Assembly: GCA_000708835.1 (NCBI GenBank)
Contig: DF237040.1
Span: forward strand, 62,001-126,000
DNA: 64,000 nt
Reading direction: 5' to 3'
Source of the DNA: Klebsormidium nitens
Lineage: Eukaryota; Plantae; Klebsormidiophyceae
Shown here: in pieces, positions 5,710 through 31,021 of the stretch
Position numbering within the stretch: position 1 is the first letter of the stretch
Layout of the letters: each line of letters begins with the position of its first letter
The notes under the pieces: model-generated
Database searches by the model: none
What the model was told of the DNA's origin: nothing
What the model saw: only the letters and a program-made list of their open reading frames with translations
Made by a program: the position numbers and the translations under genes

Positions 5710-6336
5710 GGCTGCTCTGGCGCTTTGCAACCTCCCAGGGTGATTTCTGACCAAAAACCCTTGTGCCCTCACTCCCCTCGCTTCCACTATGGTCAAACTT
5801 GTCACCCGGAAGAGTTCCAAGCAAAAGGCTCTGCCTTGCTGCAAGCAATGTCTTCAGGGGCTGAATGAGCACGCCTTGCTCTCTGCGCCAAGAGGAGAGG
5901 GGTACCTAGTATGAACGAAGAATGGAGGACTGCCTCGGAGCTCTTGGCGCCCCAAGGTTGTGGCGCGAGCTGCCTTCGAAGAATGCCGCCTGTGAGGTTG
6001 CATGCAAAGCTTGCGAGATCTCGAATCTTGCAAGTGTGAAAACGCACGTCTTCCCCCACGCGTGTCCACTCAAAGGGCGGAGCAGCGCGTCTTCACACCT
6101 GCCTCTCCTGAACAGAGCTGGGGATCCCTGCACGATCGACGTCTTGCAATATTACTTAAGCCAGGACCGTCCGTTAACCCTCGTTTTTCGCGCTCCAGGG
6201 TACCCGTATCTCTCGGAACCATCAAATTTAACCTCGTGGTTATTGCAGAGCTCAAACAAACCCCTGCATTTTCACCAGCTGATCTCAGGCTCAGCTTTGC
6301 AGAAGTGTATTGGTGGTGAAAGGCGGCGGATTCGCC

Positions 6337-9300
6337 ATGGCTTCCCAGCAGGACCCTCAGGCCCGGCCCGCTGCCACGATGGAGAGCAAAATTGCCCCCA
6401 AGCGGCCCCTTGAGAGCAGTCCCTCTGGAGGCGGTGACGCGAACAAACCTGCAATGAAACTGCAAAAGCTGGACCTCCCTCCCGCAAGTGCACCACCTCC
6501 TAAGCAAGATCCTATCAGCAGAGGGATAACGCCAGCTAACCTGTCTGCACCTATGGCTGACGTCAGAGCTGGCGGTGTGCCGCAAAGGCAGCCAGAGGCA
6601 GCTGGTAATGCGGGGCTGTTGCATCCTACAGCGGAGAAGCCAAAAGCGCCACTAGGGATTGGAAAAGATGCGCCGGTTGGAGTGTCCAATGAGGGAAAGA
6701 AGAGCCCTGCAGTTGGGGAGCAATTAAAACCTTTGGTGGAGAGCAAAAAGGCGGATGCGGCGGAGGTTAAAGGAGCGCCACCGCCAATTGAGCCTGTGAA
6801 GTTGTTGAAACCCGTGGAAGAACCTGCAAAAGCCTCAAAGCCTGAAGCGGCTGAAGTGCCGAAAAATGGAGATGAGAGCAAAGGGGGAGCCAAGGAAGGA
6901 GCAGAGGGAGGGAAAGAGGATGCTGGGAGGAAGGAGGGTGCCGCAGAGGAGGGAGGAGAGAAAGAATCGCTAGGGTTGGCGGGAAGGAGAATTCTAAGGC
7001 CCCGTCAGGCGTCGGCGCCTCCCCAGGGACAGCGCTCGAGGCTGAGGCACCGAGACGGAGAGGCAGGGTAAGTGACACATTGAAATCATATAGTGCGTAA
7101 GCTCAATTGTTTCGTCTCAGAAAGGCTTGCATTTCGCCTGTTTTAGCTGAAGTTGGAGAGCAGCACATACAAAGCTCTTGCTTTTTGACATCATCTTCAA
7201 GCATATACGAATGGCGCCGTGGATGGTGTTGGGTTGAGTGCGCAGAAGCGCGAGTTGTTTCGACAGAATCTTGCTGTAATTATCATCTCTGCATCAAACG
7301 TATTCCCACAAGTCTGCCAATTGCATTGATTGCAAGTGGTACAACGTATGAAAATGTGGGGTGATGGTACATACTTTGAGAGTATGTGTGAGCAACTCAG
7401 CACTTTGTTGCTCTGCAAATTCTGTTCAGATGCTCCATCCAGTATTGTAATTCCTGACACACTCTTGCGTCTCCTTGCAGATCTCCAGGTATGACACACT
7501 TGTCGGCAGCCCCTGATGTCGATTCGTCTAGTCGCAATCTTCTCTTTCTAAACTATCCTTTCTTTTTCCGACTGGAAAGTGAAACGGCACTGGCAATTGG
7601 CAAGGATAAGACAGTGTGGGATCTAGAGCACACTGGATTACTTTTGGAAGTACCCATGGTTCTACTTGCTTCAACGGTTGAACTGAGAAGGGTGGAAGTT
7701 TCCTTCTTCTTTTGCGCTCGCTTGGAGTCTGTTGGGGCTTCGTCATGCTTTTGGGCAATTGTTGAGTTTCCGCCTTTGACAACGCTCTCCCCTCCCCAGT
7801 GCTCATGAACACCCGTACCTGTTTTGCTAGTCCATTCCATGCATCACAGAAAGGGCATGCGCTTCATTCAGTATGTTGCGAACCTGAGTTTCAGAACCTC
7901 AATACAAGTGAAATTAGAAACAAAGGGGAAAAGAGTCTTGTTACATTCATCAGGGCTCCCGTTTTGAGCTAGACACAATGTGTGCTGCTCTGAACAGACA
8001 GGGAGAACGTTTGATAAGCCACTCTTGCCTGTTGGTGGAAAGAGCGGGCGAGACAGTGGCGACTTGCGCAATAATTGCCTTTGCTGATTGCTGCTGCTAT
8101 TTCAGTGACGACATGAAGCAAGCAACCAACGATCAGGCACCTAGCCTCCGCAACAGTCAGGATATATTCAATTGAAACTTAAGGTTGAACCACAGCTTGT
8201 CTTGAAGAAAGGGAACAAATGAAAGGAAGGCCTGCAGAGTCCGATCTTCTAGAGGGTTGAGTTATCCAAATCTACCCCATACTGTTTTGCGCGGTACTGG
8301 ATCCCACTTGCTTTGCAAATTGGTAGAAATCGGTTGTGGTCACACCCTACCGTGGGAACGGATTGTATTGGGCCAGATCACATCCTAGATCACAAGAAAC
8401 ATATCTGTCAACATATTCAACGCCCTATCCAACCATCGTCCAGATACAATCTGCGCAATGCTGGACCATTGCGTGCTCTTACAAAAAGAAAACCGGCCAG
8501 CGGTATTTGCACTTTTGCAACGGTAGATGTTAGATGCTTCACCATGTCTGTATACAGGATTGGACCACAGTCTGCTTTACAAGGAAGGAACAGGCGTGCC
8601 GGAGCTTGGAGCCACATATGACAGCTCACCCGAGGGTGACGTTGAGGGAAAGAACCTGGTGGAGGTGCGGATTCCGCCGGAGGCAATTACTCTCGCAAAC
8701 AAGCAGGTGAGGACATCGTTGGTGTGAATTCCCTTTTGCTTTTGGCAGGAGTAGTCCCCCTAAACAAGCAAACGTGTGAGGATATTGTTGTTCGCAATTC
8801 TGTCAAGGGGAAGAGAGAGGACTTTTGCTCTGTGGACAGCTAATTTGAAGATGCATTTTTGGGCAGTGATTCCAGCTGTCATCAGGGAGCTAGTAGGCAA
8901 ATGAAAACGCCTTGCCTCAACTAAGGAACTATCAATGGTCTGGTTGGGAGGGCTCAACGATTACATCTGGAGGTGTGTGGCATCTTAGCGGTGTATTGTT
9001 GAGCGTTGGAGGCAAGTGTCGGTTCAAGTCTCTGCTTTATCATCAGACATGCTCGAACATTGTATGGGCAATCCGTAAAATCTCATTCTGCCGTACTGGG
9101 TCAGGACAGGACAGGACAAGAATTTGGCAAGGGCGTCGGAGGAACTAAATCCGAACCGCTTTCCTACTTTCAGGCCGTCTTAGTTGGCTCTTGCAATGAA
9201 TACTCCGAACAGGCCCAATCATACGGGGTGGTGCTTCAATCGGGCAGCATCATGTAGAATGCTGGTGAAGAGGCAAGTTCAAGGGGCCTGTGAGGACTTG

Positions 9301-14139: not shown

Positions 14140-16857
14140 ATGCCACTTCCAACTTCCAAGTTCATGCCAACGGCATTTTGCAATGCTCACAAGTATTGTC
14201 CAGGTAGCCTGTGAAGTGCCCCATTACGCTGACTATCATCTTGTCACCTCCAAACCTTCAACTGTCCACTAGAAAGAGGGCATCCTTCCGACTTTCTGCG
14301 AGCTGGGTGCAGTAGAGGCGCTAAGGAATCAAGGGAGCAATCCAGTTGGCTTGCTGAAGAGGTCTTGTTAAGATGGCGCAAAGCGCCTTGCTCATAGCGC
14401 GAGCAGCGGTCCTTCAAGTTGCGGCACGGGGATAGGCGACCTGAGCTCAGAATTGCTCAATGTGATCTTCCACAAGCTTGGCTCCAGCCCTGTCCACTTA
14501 GCGGCGCTTCCCAGCGTCTGCAAAGCCTGGCGTGGTGTCATGCAAGAGATTACTTGGCAGCAGCTCTGCCTGGAGATCGCTCCTGGATTGTGCGAGAGAA
14601 TGGGGTATGATGTGACCGATAAGCCCCCGGGGGGCTGGTTGGCCCTCCTCAAACTCTTGTTGTATTGCCCGGGCATGCGATTTGACAGAGGCTACATAAA
14701 TAAGGATGGGGAGGAGGGCGGCTTTCTGGAGTTGATGGGGCATGTGCAAGGGAAAGTGTGCGGGTTTCAGACAGGGCGCGTGGTTGCAAAGGATCTGTTG
14801 TTGAAGGAGCCGTTCCAACACGACTGCCTGTTCGTCACACCATTGTGTCGGCACGCGTGGCTTGATAGGGATAAAAAGCTTGCGGTCTGCGCCTGCCGGG
14901 GCATGGTGTGGGACTTTCCCTACTCAGCAATTGCAAAAGAGTCAGGGGCCATCAGATATGTAGAGGCGTCTCCCCAAGAACAGCAGCTGATGAGCAGTGC
15001 GGCCAAATGTCGCTGCACGTACTGTGGGACGCCCGTATTTGTGCTGCAGGAGGTTGTCTTTTTCAACATCCAGGAGAAGTTCCGTCATTGGTGGCAGCGC
15101 GTGTTTGACAGGTGTCTTCCAGACTGGTCTGATATTACCGGGCAGGTGTGTGGGAATGGACATCTGACGTTCGAAGTCTTCGGCAAGCGGTCAAAGCGGG
15201 CGCCATTTCTCAGTGGCAAGCCAATGGCTGGGTCTGGCCAAGGTCTTGTGGTGGAAACTTCTGGGGTCATTAAAAAGGTGTATAAGGAGCTCATGCCAGA
15301 GCCCCTTGATTTCTGCGAGCTCGACGTTTGCAGGAACTTGAATCCATACACGCTCTCTCGGAAACTGACGCGACTAGCCACGGAGATCCGAGATTTCGTC
15401 TGGGACGAGTGCGAAGATGGGGAGGGGATGCCCGAGGAGCTCGGCTGTGTTGACAATTTCAACACAATGTCTGATGTCATCGAGTGGATTCCAAGGCTGG
15501 AAACACGCATCAATGAGATCATTCAGATCTACAACAACAGCACCGCTGGAATCTACAAAGACAGCTCCGACAAAGACAGCTTTGACAGAAGAAGCGAGTC
15601 CGCAGAAGATGAGGAATTTTGCGAGGAGCTTCCTTTCTGGCGCGTTCCTTGGGCCGACCTTGGGGTAGTGAAAAGGCTCCAGGACACTTCTGTCACGGGG
15701 CGTGCTGCCCAAACGATTGGCGGTTACCTTTGCCATGACACATCAAGCGCAAAGATTGTAGTCAGTGCCAACATAAGGTTGGACCGCCTTTGTTCCTTTC
15801 AATACTGGGCGGAGCGCAGGCTTGAGCGATATGAAAAAGAGCGCAAAGAGGAAATTGAAGCTGCTCTAACGGAGGCCGGCTTGCAGAAACGTGGTGGTGA
15901 TTGGCCGTTCCCTGAGGGGGTTCAAAGCTATATCAAGGTGAGTTGGCGAAGAACCCTGTTGCTCCAAAACGAAAGTTGGCTGGTCTAGGCACACTGCAAG
16001 ACGCTCTTACGATCACTTTAGAGTTCAGATCATTTTGAGAATCCAGAGGTTCTTTGGACAATAACGGACCTGGACGGAACTGAAGGGCGATGAGAAGCAG
16101 GGAGAAGCAGCAAAACGTCTTCTCAAAGGCTCGTATTCAAGTGTGACCTTACCCCACGTCCGTCACGTTTGCAAGTCAAGCACTCGAGTTGTGCCCTTCA
16201 AAATGGTCTAGGTCTGTGGAACATCGAACGGCTTGTCCCGAAGCTTCGGATTGCGTCAACCCTTTCCTGCTTGCAGCTTCAACCAGCCCTCAAAAGCCTT
16301 TGTGCAATACTACTCGAGTTGAGAATGAAGAGTAGCGTGCCTTGCAACTTGTCGAACGTGCACCTCAGATCCACCCTTTGAGCTCTTTAGAAGATAGTAA
16401 AGTAGCTTGCCGTTTCTTGAGAATCGTTCGAGTTTCGTTGCAAGAGGTTGCCTGAACGCCTTAGACACATCAAACCAACGCTTCTTGTTCGACTTTGTAG
16501 GATCCGAACGTGCCGCTGGAAGACGCCATCGACCGCCAGCAACAGTTTCTGCTGAAGGAGAAGGAAAAGAGGGCTGCAGAGCGAGCTCAACGGCGAAATG
16601 AGACCGCCTTGCGTAGGGCAGAGCAAGAGGCGAAAGTTGCCGAGCGCAAGGCTTTGCGGGAACGAAAGAAAGCAGCAGAACGCGTGTTCAGGGCGTCGCA
16701 AGGGTTGGTGGTGTGTCGGGGCACGTCGGACGGGAAGAGCTGCAATAATCTCGGATCGGAAGCATGTGCCCTTTCGGCCTGTGGTAACTGTTGTCGTACA
16801 TACACGATGGGGGTGGTATGCGGACGCCATAGGAGGCTCAGGATTGCGGACTTGTAA
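14140..16857 (+). CDS. EID1-like F-box protein with a long C-terminal extension (coiled coil plus Cys/His finger), about 661 aa
   Basis: Exons 14140-14203 (first exon tentative), 14373-15937 and 16501-16857 total 1986 nt in frame. F-box IGDLSSELLNVIFHKL..VCKAWR. PPGGWLALLKLLLYCPG, LFVTPLCRH, YCGTPVF and VCGNGHL match the EID1/EDL family pattern. Confidence 0.8.
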
Positions 16858-17687
16858 GCTAGCTGCACGCAAGCAATTGTATGCAGACAACTGCGTAGAA
16901 ACTTTGTGAATATGGCAAACATGATGACTGTGTGCATGCCCAGATTGCAATCAACGCCAGGGAACGTCGGATTCACCATGAGCCGTTCCGGCGTGTGCAG
17001 GCTGACCGACTGTATCAAATTTGATTCCAGTCAACATTATGCGCAGGCTTCCACACTGCGCATGCCGTGGTGCAGCTCCTTTGTGAGTCGATTAGTAATA
17101 CCTAAACGATAAACGAATAAGCCGTACACGCATGCGGGGTACGTTTTGCTTTGCATATGAACCATGCAAAAGATATATGGCGCAACAATTCAAAATCAGA
17201 TGGTTGACAAAAAAGCTGCAGGTTCGCATGTGGTATGTTATGCTGGCAATATGCTGCATGAGCTATCATAATCGAAAATACGTAATAGCAGAGTCAACAT
17301 GGCAGCAGGCTGTGCATGTGAGATGAATCTCATGCAACATCAGCTTATGTTAGCGCGGCCCTGGCACCGTGCTGGCATCGCATGTGCCGATTGCATTCGC
17401 GCGCTGGACACGGCATAGGCAATCATGTGAATATTCATCGCAAGACCTACTCAGTCGGCACGTGTCTATTTGTTATAAAAGCGGTGCTTTCGACGGTCCG
17501 TCACTTGTTTGCCTCCATTGGGTCAAAGGATATCCAAAAGCCTTAGGGGTTCAGATAAAATGGGACCCTTGAAGAATGGGCGATTTGGCAGCTATAAATC
17601 GCCCAACTATAAATCCATCATCAGTGTTTGATTCGCCAGCTGCACCGCCCATTACACGCCGTCGATGTGCGGAGCTCCTCCGCCCTT

Positions 17688-20600
17688 TCATTGCACGTTG
17701 TTCAGCCACGCAGCATTCAGGCGCTCCGCCACGGAATTGGGCAGAACGCCGGAAGCGACGAGCGCAGGGAAGGTCGCCAGCTTGTGCGCGAGCACGCTCG
17801 GAGGGAGCGCGCGCGTGAACTGCAAAGCCGCGACGCCATTGGCTAGGATGCCGCCGCTCAGGGTTTTGGGGTTGTAGAGGCCGGTCTGGAGGCTGCGAGA
17901 GGTCCGGATGACAGTGACCGGAACGAGTCCGCGGGCGGAAACGGACTCTCCGCCCATTGCGCCAGGCAAAACCCAGACCGTGTCGGCCACCTGCACACAC
18001 ACGTTGATCGAAGTTCAGAAGCAGCCCGAGTAAAGAGACAGCGCGGCTGCTCACGGCTACTGTTCCGAAAATCTTTGAAAGATTGGCAGATCGCCGTTGA
18101 CAGGCAGTATACCCGTTTTGCTTTCACCGTGAAGAGTGCGGCAGATTAGCGGATGTCCACTATTTGCATCATCTATCCATGAAGCGCACATTAAAGGACG
18201 GTAGCGCCGAACTTCTGAGGGTTCCGAGCGATAAGATCTGAAGACAAAAATCATGCCTGCCTTCGTCCACTTTTTTCAAGCCTATTGTAGCCCCATTGTA
18301 AGCATGCAGTAGGATTCAAAGATTAAGTGAACCTGCCGAATTTCCGGCCTAAAATACCAGAGAGTGCACGTCTCTGAAGGGGTGGGAAAGCATTCAGGCC
18401 CACCTGGACATCGGAGGCGCGCACGATCTGCGCGCGCGTTGCGAAGGGTTGGGCGTCAAGAACCGAATCGGAGGCCGCCTTGGCGGCCGCGAAAATGTAG
18501 TGGTCGGGGGTAAGCGTCAGATTGTGGCCGGTGGAAGTCTCCAGGGTCACGAACTTGGCCTGGACACGAAGGGGAGGGCTTTTGTGATCGGTTCGTGCAA
18601 TTCTAGGAACAGTGATAAAGTACGAATAATGCAGAATCTGTGGCAACACGGAGAAGCGCAAGCCAAAGCCAACTATCAAACGAAAAGCTTGGGTTGCAGG
18701 CTTTTGGTCTCGTTCTGCTCGACCGACTACGCGACATATTGCAGGATGCCAAGGTGCCTTTGTCATTCCCGGTGACGATTGGGACGCTTGTAGTACTCAG
18801 CACGCCTACTCTCCGGGAAACGTTTGGGACCAGTTCTTTCGTGGAGGCGTTCGATTGCGCTCTACTCTTGCTGCAGTCCGTTTGCTTGATCAATTTCTAT
18901 TCTAAAGGATGTCGGCTCACAATACTAACTTCGATGAGCTTCTGGCGGGTTTTAAACCCATTAGTACACCATGCAGCTAATAAAATCTAAACAACCTGTT
19001 TTTGTGGTCGATTACCTGTTCTTCCAGTGCTTTGTGGGAGAAGAAGAAGATTCGTTCGCGCATGAGCGCCCCCGTCGAAGCGTCTACTGCAATGACCTGC
19101 ATCCAGAGAGCGCGCTTTTCATGCTCTGAGGGCGCGCAATCACAGGGCCAATCCAGAACGGGACTATCGACCCTTGCAAGACCATCAGAGTTTCTACAGA
19201 TTTCCGTTTCATTGGCGAGGCTTCTCGTGTCCAGAGCCTTCGAGGCAAATCACGACGAATTCAGGTAACATTCCTCTTTCTCCGCGGACATTCCCTCAGC
19301 GTACTCGAGAGCTGCGAACTTCCCTGCGCACCTCCATGACTGAAGAGAATTTTTCTCGGTCGGCTTCATTGTCGTGGGCGTACTGAAGCTGGGCAGGATC
19401 TGGGCGCTGATTTTCAGCTTCACGAAGGCTTGACAAAGATGACAGCCCACGACTCACTGTATCGCCAATGGCCAGCTCCGCCATTCTGCGCGTCGTCCCC
19501 TCAAAGTCCGTCAGCACGCGCGCGTCGGCCGTGAAGCAGCCGCTCGCGCTGACCCCGCCGCCGGCCGCGCCGATCGCGGCGCACGCGGTCGCCTCCGCGG
19601 CCGCGACGTTGTCGTTGCTCAGAATCAGGTTGACCATCTCGTGACACGCCTCCTTGACCAGGTTTTCTCCCGTGGCAAGCTGCAGGAAAGAAGGAACACA
19701 TTTTGTCCATTACCGGGCCCTGGTGAGAGGGGTCCGTTTCCGGTCGGGACGTTGCGTCACTCACCGAGTGCATTTGCAAACGAGCAACAAGCAAGGACAT
19801 TGGTCAGTCTCGTTTCCCGGCCAGTTTCTTGCTAGGCACGCGTCGCATCAGAAAAGTGTGTTCCATTTGAACTTACAAAAGTATTCATGCTTGAAAGCAG
19901 GCCCTATCAAGGACCAATTTGAAGACAGCATGGGTTAGAAAAGCGCCATGTGAGAACCAGGCACATTTCCGGGCTCAATAGATGGTTCGGCGACTTGTAA
20001 AAAACAGCTCTCGAAACAAATGTTTCATTTATAATGCAGATTGCTGACTACCTTGAGGCAGACTGACTCCCACAATTCTAACAGAAGCGACAGATACCGA
20101 CAGGGTGTGCATTCTCGACCTACCTGGATCACCGAGTTCAGGATCCCCACGTATTTAGGTGCAAATTTGGAGACCAGCTTCGTGCAAAGTTGCGCCGCGC
20201 CAGCTTGAATCTCGTCCCCGTATTCCTGCCATCCTTCGTCCAGCGTCTGCGAGCATGCATCGGCCTGGGCGCAAACAAAAAAGAGAGGCGGATAAGTAAG
20301 TTGTCTCCAGATGCAGAGCTTAAGGCAGAGCCTGAGAGGAGACTGCGGGATGCACTAGAAGAACAGCAGTTCCCGCGCCTTCGTGCGATCTCCTAATCCA
20401 CAAGTCCATGAAAGCCCTTTGCTTGGACAAGCGTAACGGCTTTTAAGGATAAGTGAGAGCCTTATCCTTCGGGTCGTGTAGACTTTTTGGAAGTGTGTTG
20501 TGAGTGTTCCGGTACGAACATCGTATTGGCCTGTCCAGCAAACGGTCCCCCGACATCAAGTCTCCCAATCGCATCTTGTTTTCGATCACCCCGATTGCAA

Positions 20601-21029
20601 GCAACCCTAGATGCTAACAAACTCCGAGTTGGTCGAAAGGAATGGAAAATACTATGTGAAGTCTGCTTTGAATAAAACTGGTCTGAAGTTGAGTTTCCTC
20701 CGTGCCGTTGAAACCTGCGAACTCTCAGCAGCCCGTGGATCTTCCTCAACACTCGGCTTCTGCAACTTGACGCCACAGGAGAAGCGATTACTTCAGTCTG
20801 AGAAAGAAAAACATACCCTGGTGTCTTGAGGAGTTTCAAGGTACGCCTGGCACTCCGACAGGGAAGACGTGTAGACCGCCACGTCGACGTTGCTCGCGCA
20901 GAAATCGTCACTGCAGGTACATTCTCCTGCCACGCAGCACAGGTTTGCCCGCACCGCTCCTGGGCCGACCGCTAGGATCAGCAGAAGCGCGGCCACCCAC
21001 CAACGCAAAGCATTGCTCGTGGAAGCCAT
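17688..21029 (-). CDS. Secreted Cys-rich protein with a C-terminal Hedgehog-type Hint (Hog) autoprocessing domain, 371 aa, 6 exons
   Basis: Exons 21029-20817, 20264-20124, 19679-19458, 19096-19016, 18559-18404 and 17990-17688, all phase 0, total 1116 nt. Signal peptide LRWWVAALLLILAVGPGAVRA. Hint start G|CFTADARV..RRMAELAIGDTV, block B LTLTPDHYIF, and C-terminal GLYNPKTLSGGILANGVAA. Confidence 0.88.
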
Positions 21030-24000
21030 GGCGAAGTATCTGTGTTTGAAAGAGTGCAGCAGAGTAAGAAGGGGCATTTTGGATTGTGACTGGTTGCTGG
21101 TCCAGCGCTGGGGGAAGCGTAGAAAAAGAATGGGACTTTCCTACGTGAAGATGGGTCGGGAGGCAGGCTTGTACTGAAGATCATGGAGTGGTGGTCAGAC
21201 GAGTAAATCAAGGTTGAAGGACATAGAGACAGCCACACACAAACATCTAGGTTTTGAGTAACTCTGTTTGCCTTTCACGGCACCTTTTGTTCGCTCTGAG
21301 TTATTCGACCAAGGCAGGAAACGAGATAAACGCCCTGATAAGCGATGAGCAATGCAGACATCAGATTGGATGCATCTATGTGGCGAGCTTACAAGGACCG
21401 CCTCATAATGGAGGAGTCTGCAATTGCACGGCAGGATGATCCAATCATGACTCACCGCTCCTCTACCACGACCGGAGGTCGACGCCCGCGCGTTGTGCGC
21501 TTGCGCTGCTGCTCTTGAAGCTTTGCCACGGGCTCGCCCAAAGCTCCAAAGAAGCCTTCAGAAGAAGGTGCACTTTGGAGCTCCTTTATCTTACCGTAAG
21601 AAAGCTTGCTCGATCTGAATGCAGCTGATTGCTCTCCGGAAACAGCGAAGCTTGGAATGAGGCTCGCAACTAATCTTGGTCCGTATTTGTGCACTCGCCT
21701 CTTACAAAAAGGTGGAGAAGCTAGTGCAAGGAAACATACTTTGAGCAGCCCTCAGCGCAGCGTGACCAAACGCAGCGGTTAAGAACGAGAAACCGCCCAG
21801 TAGAGAAAAGTTGACGCACTCCTGGCCAAGTCTCGCTGCCAGGCTCGGAACAGTACTGGACACCAAGGGCTGTCTCACTGTATGTATGCTAAATCGTAGC
21901 TATAGCTATAACCTACAAGTAAGCTGCGGACACTTCTCCGCACCCATGATCCGATGTACAACTGTACAGCTAAGAGAAAGCCTAGCTTGGCACTGTTGAG
22001 AAGCATGGTGCACGCGGGTCCAAGTATCAACCCTGTACCTGTAGGACTCTTCATCTGGTCCCATTTTGGTAGTATAGGATAGATGAGCAGCTGCGCACTA
22101 CTGGAAGTTGGAAAGTTGCCACCCCCGCAGGCAGCCCCACGGGTCCCACGGTCGGTGCACATGGGTCTCACATTCTTTGTCTGCTGGCTACGCTTCAACT
22201 TGTGCAACTTGCTGTGGCTGCAAAGTAAGCTCAAATGATTGGCCAGCACGTGTCTTCGAGCAGACCTGCAAATTGAAGCCGTAGGCCAGGTCTCTCCTTG
22301 GATGGTCTGACATCATGGTCATATCAACCGCCTTTGCATGATGCATCAGCTTATACACTAGGAATATTCCTAAACGGCGAACCAGACAATTCCGTCGAGT
22401 ATGCCCTAAGTGGACCTCAGCTGTTGACCCTAGCTGGTGGACGTCATCATGCACTGCAATGCAGTATAGTTACAACAGCAATCTGTCCCCGACTCTGTCG
22501 GTCCGCGTTCCCAGACGCTTACGATTGCAGACGCATGCATGATGATTATGCGGATGTTGCAGCCAAACGCAGTTTGGCAAGGGGCATTCAAGCTATTGCC
22601 TCACGTGCATGCTGCTTGAGGCTCTGGCCAATCACATTCCCGCGTCGGTACACGGGACGTGCACGGGACGGTAGCCGCGAGAGCAGACGCGTCAGCTCAG
22701 TGCGCAAGTTGACCAGTTCTCAACGTTTGCCCTGTAGGCTTGTGACAGTGCGAGATTGCGAATGTGTCTTCGCGAGAACGATGTCGTCATTATTGTCGGG
22801 ATGTCGCTGCGGTTGCTATGACAACACTACGAGATCGAGGTGGCCTAAGCCCCACTGCCAAGAACGAAAGTCAATTGAACATGTTATCGTGTACAAGTCG
22901 GTTACTCGTGAGCTCGTGTACGGCTGCTGTTATCTCCAGTAGAGAAGACGGATTCAATAGTCCGTCTTTCAAACTTGAATATGAAAGCACTGGTCCGACA
23001 GCTCAGTTCAGATTGAACGAAACAATGGAATCGAACGCGCGGATATCGGAAGACGATATGAACCGTCCAATCCTGTCTAGCAGTGGTTCATGACCATGGA
23101 TGCCAACGTCCAACGCACGAAATGCACGTGTAAATGCTTGTGCAATATCACCGTACAACAAGGTGCCGTTCCATACCAGCTGAGAAAGCAGGACAGGCAC
23201 TGTAGCCAGTCAATGGCAGGCGCCGCATGCATGTTGCGGCGAGCAGCGGCTTCGACTTTCTTGCAGCTCATACGCGGACTCGACCACTGTGCATTATGCA
23301 ACGCTTAGCACGGGATCAGCATGAAGTGCCAATAGGACCTAGTCTGAGTGCCAGTGCTGATGTCGGTGATTCCGCCTCCACTTATGACACTTAGCACTAG
23401 CAGCCGCCGGCCGCGCGCGGCAGCGGTTCAGTTGAGTGCCGCGTTTCCAGTGAATCGTGACAGTGACAGTGTACCTCAAAGGGCATTATACAACTGCACG
23501 CCGCTCGCGCACTCGAAATCGAGGGCTGACGAGTCGGCGTCGCAAACATCGGAAGGCCTCGGTTGAGTCTCAAGATCCAAAAATACATCGGCAATACAAT
23601 TTGAGCTTACCCGGTATCTCAATTTGCGCCCGGTTCACAAGGCCTCATTGGGTGGCCATTGTCGCCGGCCCGACTGTAGGAGTTTGTAAACAGTCAAGGT
23701 CCATTTGATGGCGGACCTTGAATCGGGCCCCTTGGCGGACGGCCCACGGCTTAAACGAAGGAGCTCAGCATGAGTGATCGAAAACCCTCTTTTCGATCGC
23801 AATCTTTTTTGCAGAGTGCGGGTCGAATCTCTTGTATACTCTGATATCATGGGCGCGGATTGCACATGAGGAGAGCATTAGAGTTCCGATCATGGCCAGG
23901 GGCCATGTTGCAATTCGTTACGCAGGGATGTTGCAATGATGGCAGAAGTTCAGTGACCGAACGCACATGTTCGAACATGCATATGGGGCGAGCCTTGACG

Positions 24001-28894: not shown

Positions 28895-29539
28895 TCTGAC
28901 ACCAAATCAAACAACCTATCGTTCAACGACCTCCTCTACAAAGCAGGCCGTACAAGCTTTTGGAAAGGGGCGGATTACAACTCAGTTGGTAACCAGCAGT
29001 GAGACAGCAATGTTCTCTTCTCAGCAATGGCAAAAGTTGCTGTGCACATCAATTTAGCTCACAAATTGTTCTCTGCCTCTGTTCCTCGGTGACGAATCCT
29101 TGCGTGAGTACTCTTACAGTACCGTTATCGAAAAGCGGCGCCAAAGGCATCGCCCTTAACGCTTGTTTTGGCAGGGCGAATGCAAGAACCGGCTGCTCCT
29201 GCCGTTACGCCTGCCGTGTGTGGCGGCCTCAAGATTGGTAGGCGTGGCAGAAGCAGCATTCAGCAAAGCTCATATTTTCGTTCTCATGCAAGGGGAAGAC
29301 AGGAACACAAGTTACAACTGAGCTGAAGCAATCTGCATACATGTCTGTTCTCGGTAGGAGGATCCTAGACCGAGACCGGACTCTTATATCTTCGGACTGT
29401 TGGCGTTGCCGACCCATTTATACCGGGCTCGTGTGTGTGTGTTCGGTGTTGGCACCTTCTCACGAGTCCATTGTCTCATCCATCTTCGGTCAACAGCGCA
29501 CACAGTTGGTTATCCTGCCGTCCTCTTTTGACGGTAAGA

Positions 29540-31021
29540 ATGGCAGAAGACGGAAACCTCGAAAGTGACTGCCCCTTTGACCGGCTCTCTGACGAGATCC
29601 TTCAGCAGATCCTTGAACGGGCATGCGGTTGGAATTGGTGTCTTCCTGTGTGGAAGCTGCCAGACCTGGCTGGAGATGGCTGCTGGGTGTCAGCCCGCAA
29701 ACTGAATACTCTTTCGGGCGTTTGTCAGAGATTCAGGCAGCTGAACGTTGCGGGGACCGCCAAGCATGTTATTTGGGCATTCCAAAAGGCTGGCACGCCG
29801 ATGGTTGGGGTTGCAGCCATGAGCCAGACTGGCGAGCATCTACGGAGTCTGGCAATGCACTACATACAGCGGGATGAGTCTCGTGAGCAGGGCCAAAGGA
29901 TTCAAGCTAGTGCTTCCATTGAGTTGCTAACTGCTATCCTTAGGCAGTCAACCAATCTCGACACCTTCTTATTGGTTGACAATCGGCTCCCGCAAAGTGA
30001 GGAAGCCTCTCAACATCTCTGGAAACTGATTGGAGGACTTCCTCTCAGGCGCTTCTGGTTGGTAGATTCGGGATTCAGTTGCTTGGAGCGAATGAGAAGT
30101 ACACTGAAGTTCCGGCATTTGGTGGAAGTGAAAATAAAGTCTACAAGCATTTCTGACCAATTTGTTGACTCCCTATTACGCCAAGCTCCTGTGCTTGAGA
30201 CACTGTGCCTGAAAGGGTGTACTGGTCTAGAAGAGCCGAGTTTCCAGTCTCAAAGTCTGAAGGACTTGAGCTTAGATTTGAACCTCATCTATGATTTGAG
30301 AAGCGGCGCAGTGGTTGTCAACGCACCAAATCTGAGGTCTCTGATGGGGATTCCTAAGCTCCGCCTTCTTCGCCTACACGCCCCCCTGCTTGATCGGCTG
30401 GGTTTGCTTGGTCCAGTATCAGTTATTGAACCTGAGAACCATAGATTCAAGCTGTCAGAGCTGAAGATTGAAGGAGACAAGTGGCGGATGGCACAACTAG
30501 AGGGGCTTTTGCATAAGTTCAGGCCTTCGGAGAAACTCAAGCTCGTGTTTGACATGAAGTACTGGGCCCAAGATAGTGAAGCTCGCTGTCTCTCCACGTT
30601 CTTGCAAAAAATGCCTCCCACATTGATTCAGTGGAATGTGAGCACAGCAAGTAGTCAGCTATACGTCGGAGAAAACTGCTCAAGTAAGCTGCGCAGAATC
30701 CAATTCGATCTGCTCAAGTATGTGCACTTCGTCGTGTTATCTCGCGAGGACTTCAAGGTGATGACTGCACTCTTGGGTTGTTGCCCAAAGCTTGAGAAGG
30801 TAGTTGTAGAGTTGAGGCATCTTGAAAGTCCCGTAGACAAGCTTGCAACGAGGGCCGTTGAACTGCAAAAAGCCCACCCGCATGCAGACATAAGCTTTGA
30901 GGAGCCCCCTCATTACGTGTCATCAGGACTTCTTTTAGAGACAGCAGAGATGGGCCAGGAGGCAATGGACGCACTGTTACAAGAGTGCTACCCGCCGTCG
31001 TGGCGTAGAGGATTCCAATAA
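29540..31021 (+). CDS. Intronless F-box/LRR (RNI-like) protein, about 493 aa
   Basis: Single open frame from ATG 29540. F-box PFDRLSDEILQQILERA..LSGVCQRFR. LRR-like segments LRRFWL, LRHLVEVKI, LETLCLKGC, LKDLSLDL, LRSLMG, LRRIQF and CPKLEKVVV. Confidence 0.82.
   Translation: MAEDGNLESDCPFDRLSDEILQQILERACGWNWCLPVWKLPDLAGDGCWVSARKLNTLSGVCQRFRQLNVAGTAKHVIWAFQKAGTPMVGVAAMSQTGEHLRSLAMHYIQRDESREQGQRIQASASIELLTAILRQSTNLDTFLLVDNRLPQSEEASQHLWKLIGGLPLRRFWLVDSGFSCLERMRSTLKFRHLVEVKIKSTSISDQFVDSLLRQAPVLETLCLKGCTGLEEPSFQSQSLKDLSLDLNLIYDLRSGAVVVNAPNLRSLMGIPKLRLLRLHAPLLDRLGLLGPVSVIEPENHRFKLSELKIEGDKWRMAQLEGLLHKFRPSEKLKLVFDMKYWAQDSEARCLSTFLQKMPPTLIQWNVSTASSQLYVGENCSSKLRRIQFDLLKYVHFVVLSREDFKVMTALLGCCPKLEKVVVELRHLESPVDKLATRAVELQKAHPHADISFEEPPHYVSSGLLLETAEMGQEAMDALLQECYPPSWRRGFQ

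Follow-up and report, generated by a model that had tools for sequence, protein, structure and literature searches.

In this study, we analysed a protein-coding gene on the minus strand (21029..17688) of a 64,000-nucleotide stretch of DNA from the streptophyte green alga Klebsormidium nitens (assembly GCA_000708835.1, contig DF237040.1, positions 62,001 to 126,000), referred to as the window throughout. The gene consists of six exons with an uninterrupted frame of 371 codons. With moderate confidence we read its product as a self-cleaving non-metazoan Hog precursor of 371 residues, in which a putative signal peptide, a cargo domain with ten cysteines and a flexible linker are followed by a Hint domain and a helix-loop-helix tail resembling the sterol recognition region (SRR) or adduct recognition region (ARR) of known Hog domains. 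Architecture, family membership, purifying selection and splicing at at least one junction are established here, and the gene adds a member to the known non-metazoan Hog proteins (Bürglin 2008, PMC2362128). It offers a convenient test case but does not represent a new type of system. Of note are its orphan cargo and its natural active site, with His and Gln at the positions of Hedgehog Asp46 and Cys143.

Hog architecture of the encoded protein

The exons (E1 to E6) were translated one by one from the minus strand, the region 17400–21400 being read. Residues 1–28 resemble a signal peptide by eye, with R9, a hydrophobic core WWVAALLLILAV and then GPGAVRA/N; the n-h-c pattern is typical, small residues occupy positions −3 and −1, and cleavage is predicted after AVRA, with the pattern conserved in the orthologue described below. 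Residues 29–165 comprise 137 amino acids with exactly ten cysteines (E1 6, E2 2, E3 2), and the linker AAIGAAGGGVSASG ends at Gly165/Cys166-Phe167. Cys166 is the sole cysteine of the C-terminal 206 residues, the Hog part, whose tail after Hint measures ~42 residues and ends in LNNVQ directly before the stop codon. The initial annotation had described a domain of ~137 residues with ten cysteines, a Gly/Ala linker, G/CF and TPDH, all of which were found in the exon translations, and every coordinate that it gave for the gene, Cys166 and TPDH was correct on re-reading. It had also considered that the N-terminal and Hint exons might lie on different transcripts. At exon 3 this cannot be so: a single exon encodes Cys130 and Cys151 of the cargo, the linker and the opening 27 residues of Hint, and hence ties cargo and Hint together physically, irrespective of the upstream exons.

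Family membership was assessed with the Pfam Hint profile PF01079 (gathering score 29.7 bits), against which the gene was scored exon by exon. E3 (17.1 bits, exon residues 43–73), E5 (25.5 bits) and E6 (14.7 bits) match collinear profile segments (8–37, 65–103 and 122–158), summing to a rough total of 57 bits, so that the three scores together would lie above the cut-off; a Hedge domain was not matched by Pfam. The one exhaustive search, in which E6 alone was compared by HMMER with 1.84 billion representative proteins, returned 80 proteins at E ≤ 1e-3, and in all 26 fetched family proteins with an inspected Pfam record PF01079 is present. Among the relatives are a transcript-derived Klebsormidium subtile protein from EukProt (P0067, 105.9 bits against PF01079), a second protein with 53.6 bits (P0053) and Apatococcus 'Hint domain-containing proteins'. 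When ten longer relatives were aligned with each of the four Hint exons in a row of its own (A3), the exons tiled the Hog domain of the relatives end to end, with neither gaps nor overlaps.

Searching the Protein Data Bank (PDB) with E6 alone by phmmer gave a chance match only (E = 1.1), and the family profile was needed to reach Hedgehog. The A3 profile matched Drosophila Hedgehog 6TD6 at 3e-30, the D46H Hint structure 6TYY at 3e-27, 1AT0 at 3.5e-25 and human Sonic Hedgehog 7E2I at 2.6e-24, compared with merely 8e-5 to 1e-2 for inteins. The alignment to Hedgehog passes through Hint into the first SRR helix, up to Hedgehog residue 425 (SLAHWGLAPMRLL in Hedgehog, SVLAHKLATFPALVAS in the window), a stretch which corresponds to motif K of Bürglin (PMC2362128). 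In the window gene the motif K region reads PPSVLAHKLATFPALVAS and is followed by a second short helix-like stretch, so that Hint is succeeded by an SRR/ARR tail containing this motif. Of the remaining motifs, Gly165/Cys166-Phe167 aligns with the CF(P) column of the relatives and with Hedgehog C1 (motif A), TPDH aligns with Hedgehog TPAH (motif B), and GGILANGVAALQFT aligns with Hedgehog GTIVVNSVAASCYA at motif J (..G.I.VN.VxAS-C-Y.), with Cys replaced by Gln. Replacement of the motif-J cysteine is accepted for non-metazoan Hogs (PMC2362128). By its sequence features the gene product is a Hog-domain protein, and those of Hedgehog proper and of inteins are lacking. The Hedgehog-like Hint/Hog identification of the initial annotation is thus borne out by G/CF, TPDH, the SRR-like tail and the PF01079 and A3 profile matches. 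A full-text literature search for Klebsormidium with Hedgehog and Hint returned nothing relevant.

Orphan cargo, orthologue and expression

The cargo is not the Hedge signalling domain (PF01085), in agreement with the non-Hedge cargo predicted initially: at E ≤ 10, exons 1 and 2 and the N-terminal portion of exon 3 all went without a Pfam match. Searches with the short exons found no relatives of the cargo beyond the orthologue. This holds for phmmer searches of the PDB that used E2 or the mature segment of E1, for the ESM Atlas feature search with E1 residues 29–71 and with E2, and for a word search with E1 that was restricted by protein length. A word search with a 222-aa open reading frame (ORF) of the orthologous contig, limited to its E1 part and with proteins of 122–388 aa eligible, recovered only itself. 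Two metagenome pattern scans, with E1 and with an alignment of E1 (A4), were blank, a weak result since the orthologue's own contig was missed too. When E1 and E2 were compared by phmmer with the first 80 fetched proteins of the Hog family, and when the cargo was searched by tblastn in three further sequences (L002, L003, L004), no match was obtained, and no exon was found to have a paralogue in the rest of the 64-kb window.

Where the N-terminus of a relative is complete, the cargo domains seen there are many and unrelated, often rich in cysteine, and a linker rich in Ser/Thr or Gly separates them from CFP. In the Hog family the cargo is thus, as a rule, specific to the lineage, as Bürglin pointed out for the Hogs of moss, red algae, alveolates and jakobids (PMC2362128). 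The ten cysteines of the window cargo probably form five disulfides. As a side observation, a eukaryotic assembly (NCBI GCA_030012885.1; also an ENA metagenome assembly) contains two Hog genes ~3.3 kb apart on opposite strands (L002 1992–2726(−) and 6001–6543(+), with the same layout in L003), neither of which bears the cargo domain of the window gene.

An orthologue resides on a 98-kb JGI metagenome contig (L001), which bears the top E6 match, an ORF fragment with 90% identity (P0001). All six exons are present in order with 65–91% protein identity. The counterpart of exon 1 (L001 1762–1974) is 76% identical and keeps 6/6 cysteines, exon 2 keeps both splice sites and both cysteines, and conservation peaks at exon 6 (91% amino-acid identity; dN/dS 0.20). 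The start ATG is the same, 10/10 splice sites lie at the same positions, and all ten cargo cysteines, G/CF, FFFSHK, TPDH and the Gln are retained, with a linker four residues shorter than in the window. DNA identity amounts to 80–90% in exons and 59–65% in introns. Across 156 codons of cargo the ratio of nonsynonymous to synonymous substitution (dN/dS, Nei-Gojobori, summed by exon) is 0.21, and across 206 codons of the Hog part it is 0.23, with ~0.2 in every exon; both halves are therefore under purifying selection.

Four sequencing runs, presumed to be RNA and none recorded as such, were examined for transcripts. One of them yielded a 183-nt contig in which 19093–19016 is joined to 18558–18455, skipping 456 bases bounded by GT..AG on the minus strand, and its junction (19016/18559) coincides exactly with the predicted E4–E5 junction. 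The gene is thus at least weakly expressed in this presumed-RNA run. The other three runs contained no contig on the gene, and expression is therefore low or conditional.

These data also bear on whether the model might be an artefact, either a pseudogene or two adjacent genes wrongly joined. Such a reading could draw on the thin RNA support, with three of the four runs lacking a contig, on the protein collections searched, in which no annotated protein for the gene turned up and an exact look-up of a 104-aa ORF of the window gave no record, and on a one-base frame break in exon 2 of L001. Against it stand the open frame of 371 codons over six exons with canonical and conserved splice sites (the five introns are all GT..AG, of phase 0, and end in a pyrimidine-rich tract and CAG), the dN/dS of ~0.2 in every exon, exon 3 bearing both cargo and Hint, and the E4–E5 junction confirmed by the contig. 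We consider an artefact very improbable, and it is highly probable that the gene is real and intact.

Active site and proposed processing

For the active site, 99 family proteins together with the window and orthologue exons were aligned to the A3 model, and columns were counted where covered. The position of Hedgehog C1 is Cys in 25 of 25 family proteins and Cys166 in the window, T69 is Thr or Ser in 82/82 (Thr236), H72 is His in 81/82 (His239), and the general base D46 is His in 78/78 (His213), so that the window gene displays the family consensus residue at all four. At C143, the family has Thr in 79/99 and the window Gln328; Ala, Ile, Val or Asn is found there in ~14% of the family. Of the active-site set of Hedgehog proper, C1, T69 and H72 are therefore present, while D46 is replaced by His213 and C143 by Gln328. 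The initial annotation had correctly named the G/CF and TPDH residues and had left both replacements unmentioned. Seen across the fetched algal and protist Hogs as a group (P0001–P0099), the exchange of the general base, His for Asp46, is a natural one, and a hydroxyl takes the place of a thiol at the second-nucleophile position.

We propose a model in which the precursor would enter the endoplasmic reticulum and Cys166 would attack the carbonyl of Gly165 in an N-to-S acyl shift, aided by Thr236 and His239. The thioester would subsequently be resolved by a hydroxyl nucleophile activated by His213; candidates are a membrane sterol or another alcohol retained by the ARR tail, with water as the fallback. 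The disulfide-rich cargo (29–165) would thereby be released for secretion, possibly esterified at Gly165. Drosophila Hedgehog with the engineered exchange D46H (D303H) keeps its structure and cholesterol transfer and accepts more sterols (PMC9163320; PDB 6TYY), and engineered D46H Hedgehog is processed in cells (PMC12054796, Fig. 1C); on account of this activity, a working general base is plausibly provided by His213 in the window protein. With Gln at residue 328, where neither Cys, Ser nor Thr is available, the second, branched (thio)ester proposed for animal Hedgehog cannot form, and transfer would go straight from the Cys166 thioester. We additionally counted in favour of a self-cleaving precursor that Cys166 is the sole cysteine of the Hog part and that the number of cargo cysteines is even. 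In our estimate, cleavage at Gly165/Cys166 is fairly likely and a lipid adduct on the cargo rather doubtful. The function as a signal or defence protein offered by the initial annotation is conjectural.

The residue at the C143 position also admits the reading that Gln328 blocks the reaction and that Hint no longer processes, leaving an uncleaved two-domain protein that would be secreted or membrane-associated. In animal Hedgehog C143 is proposed to bear the branched thioester, and C143A and C143D abolish both processing and cleavage by dithiothreitol (PMC12054796); the window gene shares its Gln with L001, P0053 and P0048. In a maximum-likelihood tree of the E6-equivalent region, which is rough given its 93 columns only, the window gene groups with L001/P0001, P0053 and P0048 in a single supported clade (98/73, followed by 100/90 and 100/95). 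Since 4/4 members of this clade share the Gln, Gln328 is not random decay. Furthermore, Cys166, Thr236, His239 and His213 are all kept at a Hog dN/dS of 0.23, and the ~14% of the family that carry no nucleophile at this position indicate that the family does not strictly need one. Loss of processing is, in our estimate, quite unlikely.

Given cleavage, the Hog domain might act by hydrolysis or through an unspecific small nucleophile only, as a self-removing pro-domain from which the cargo is freed unmodified and without lipid. The tail after Hint would fit this, being short at ~42 residues compared with ~63 in Hedgehog. In addition, non-metazoan Hogs have no known adduct, hence Bürglin's name ARR (PMC2362128), and vertebrate SHhC domains display measurable spontaneous hydrolytic cleavage in vitro (PMC13738340). 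However, the His at the general-base position is invariant (78/78), the conserved tail can be aligned with the first helix of the Hedgehog SRR, and no exon is better conserved than E6, in which the tail lies; together these points argue that selection acts beyond thioester formation. We therefore regard release by hydrolysis alone as rather unlikely. In its most far-reaching form, the self-cleaving precursor would mean that the alga secretes a lineage-specific disulfide-rich protein whose C-terminal Gly is esterified to a plant-type sterol or other lipid by a Hog domain with His as general base and without a second nucleophile, which we consider unlikely. If true, this would be a 'single-thioester' version of Hedgehog cholesterolysis and the first demonstrated sterol- or lipid-tagged secreted protein of the plant lineage.

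Several points weigh against the self-cleaving precursor as a whole. Cleavage, adduct and secretion are inferred for the window protein as for the entire family, and the signal peptide, assigned by eye, is putative. Taken singly, each exon scores below the 29.7-bit cut-off of PF01079. Gln328 stands at Hedgehog C143, whose change to Ala or Asp blocks processing in animals (PMC12054796). RNA support consists of the single 183-nt contig from one of four presumed-RNA runs, covering one junction, and E1, E2 and E3 are linked solely through conservation and reading frame. Lastly, exon 2 of L001 (2461–2602) measures 142 nt compared with 141 in the window, and the extra base would shift the frame; it is either a very recent frame break or an assembly error, and this copy may be broken, while the other exon lengths and the splice sites of L001 stay compatible.

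Relation to known systems and gene features

Non-animal Hogs have been catalogued since 2008, and in the literature searched neither cleavage nor an adduct has been demonstrated for any of them. With 371 aa the window gene is small; it is also intact, evolves under purifying selection, shows at least weak expression and comes from a culturable relative of land plants. Its natural His46 and Gln143 bear directly on two current mechanistic questions, namely what the general base contributes and whether processing must pass through the branched intermediate at C143.

The closest description is that of the non-metazoan Hogs (PMC2362128), comprising the 'plant Hog' of moss and Selaginella and those of red algae, alveolates and jakobids, which follow the same plan of signal peptide (putative in the window protein), lineage-specific and often Cys-containing upstream domain without known relatives, and Hog. 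Motifs A and B, a motif J in which the Cys is replaced, and motif K in the tail are common to them and the window gene. In contrast, the window cargo matches 0/99 fetched family proteins, and the motif-J position is Gln rather than Ser, Thr or Asp as given by Bürglin, whose survey does not mention green algae. It should be noted that the moss Hogs are likened to the window gene by description and not by sequence. With animal Hedgehog Hh-C (PF01079; 1AT0, 6TYY, 6TD6, 7E2I) the gene has in common Gly/Cys-Phe, TxxH, the Hint signature and the first SRR helix (..LAH..L.P...L). It differs in lacking the Hedge (HH_signal) domain, in carrying His at Asp46, a natural version of the engineered D46H, and Gln at Cys143, and in its shorter tail without a recognisable HWY motif. 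The nematode proteins warthog, groundhog and quahog follow the same principle of varied secreted cargo fused to Hog (PMC2362128, PMC1636047), but their cargo is unrelated, their lineage is another one, and their Hog domains retain two conserved cysteines. The Hint fold and the acyl-shift chemistry of an N-terminal Cys are features of inteins and bacterial intein-like (BIL) domains too, whereas the Hint of the window gene is C-terminal, without a C-extein and without the terminal Asn and nucleophile. An intein or BIL reading was rejected from this architecture and from the profile scores (8e-5 or worse compared with 3e-30 for Hedgehog).

Table 1. Positions of exons and functional sites of the Hog gene in the window.
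Feature	Position	Strand	Content
Exon 1 (E1)	21029-20817	-	71 codons; ATG 21029-21027, putative signal peptide (residues 1-28), first 43 cargo residues, 6 Cys
Exon 2 (E2)	20264-20124	-	47 codons; cargo residues 72-118, 2 Cys
Exon 3 (E3)	19679-19458	-	74 codons; cargo end (Cys130, Cys151), Gly/Ala linker, Gly165/Cys166-Phe167, first 27 Hint residues
Cys166 codon	19538-19536	-	predicted catalytic nucleophile (Hedgehog C1), within exon 3
Exon 4 (E4)	19096-19016	-	27 codons; Hint strands, His213
His213 codon	19036-19034	-	at the position of the Hedgehog general base Asp46/Asp303, by A3 and profile alignment to Hedgehog
Exon 5 (E5)	18559-18404	-	52 codons; Hint motif B
TPDH (Thr236..His239)	18511-18500	-	Hint motif B, exon 5
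Exon 6 (E6)	17990-17688	-	100 codons and TGA; remaining Hint (GLYNPKT, GGILANGVAALQFT), tail, stop
Gln328 codon	17822-17820	-	at the Hedgehog C143 position, exon 6
SRR/ARR-like tail	~17813-17691	-	exon 6
Stop codon	17690-17688	-	TGA, exon 6

An in-frame ATG at 21077–21075, 16 codons upstream of 21029, would add MPLLTLLHSFKHRYFA and was rejected as the start because it is absent from L001, where indels also break the frame. The gene is flanked by two long intron-free ORFs, of which the first (14453–15988(+)) shows a weak F-box-like match of 17.5 bits, under the cut-off, and the second (29435–31021(+)) a 47-bit match to the leucine-rich repeat region of FBD-associated F-box proteins.

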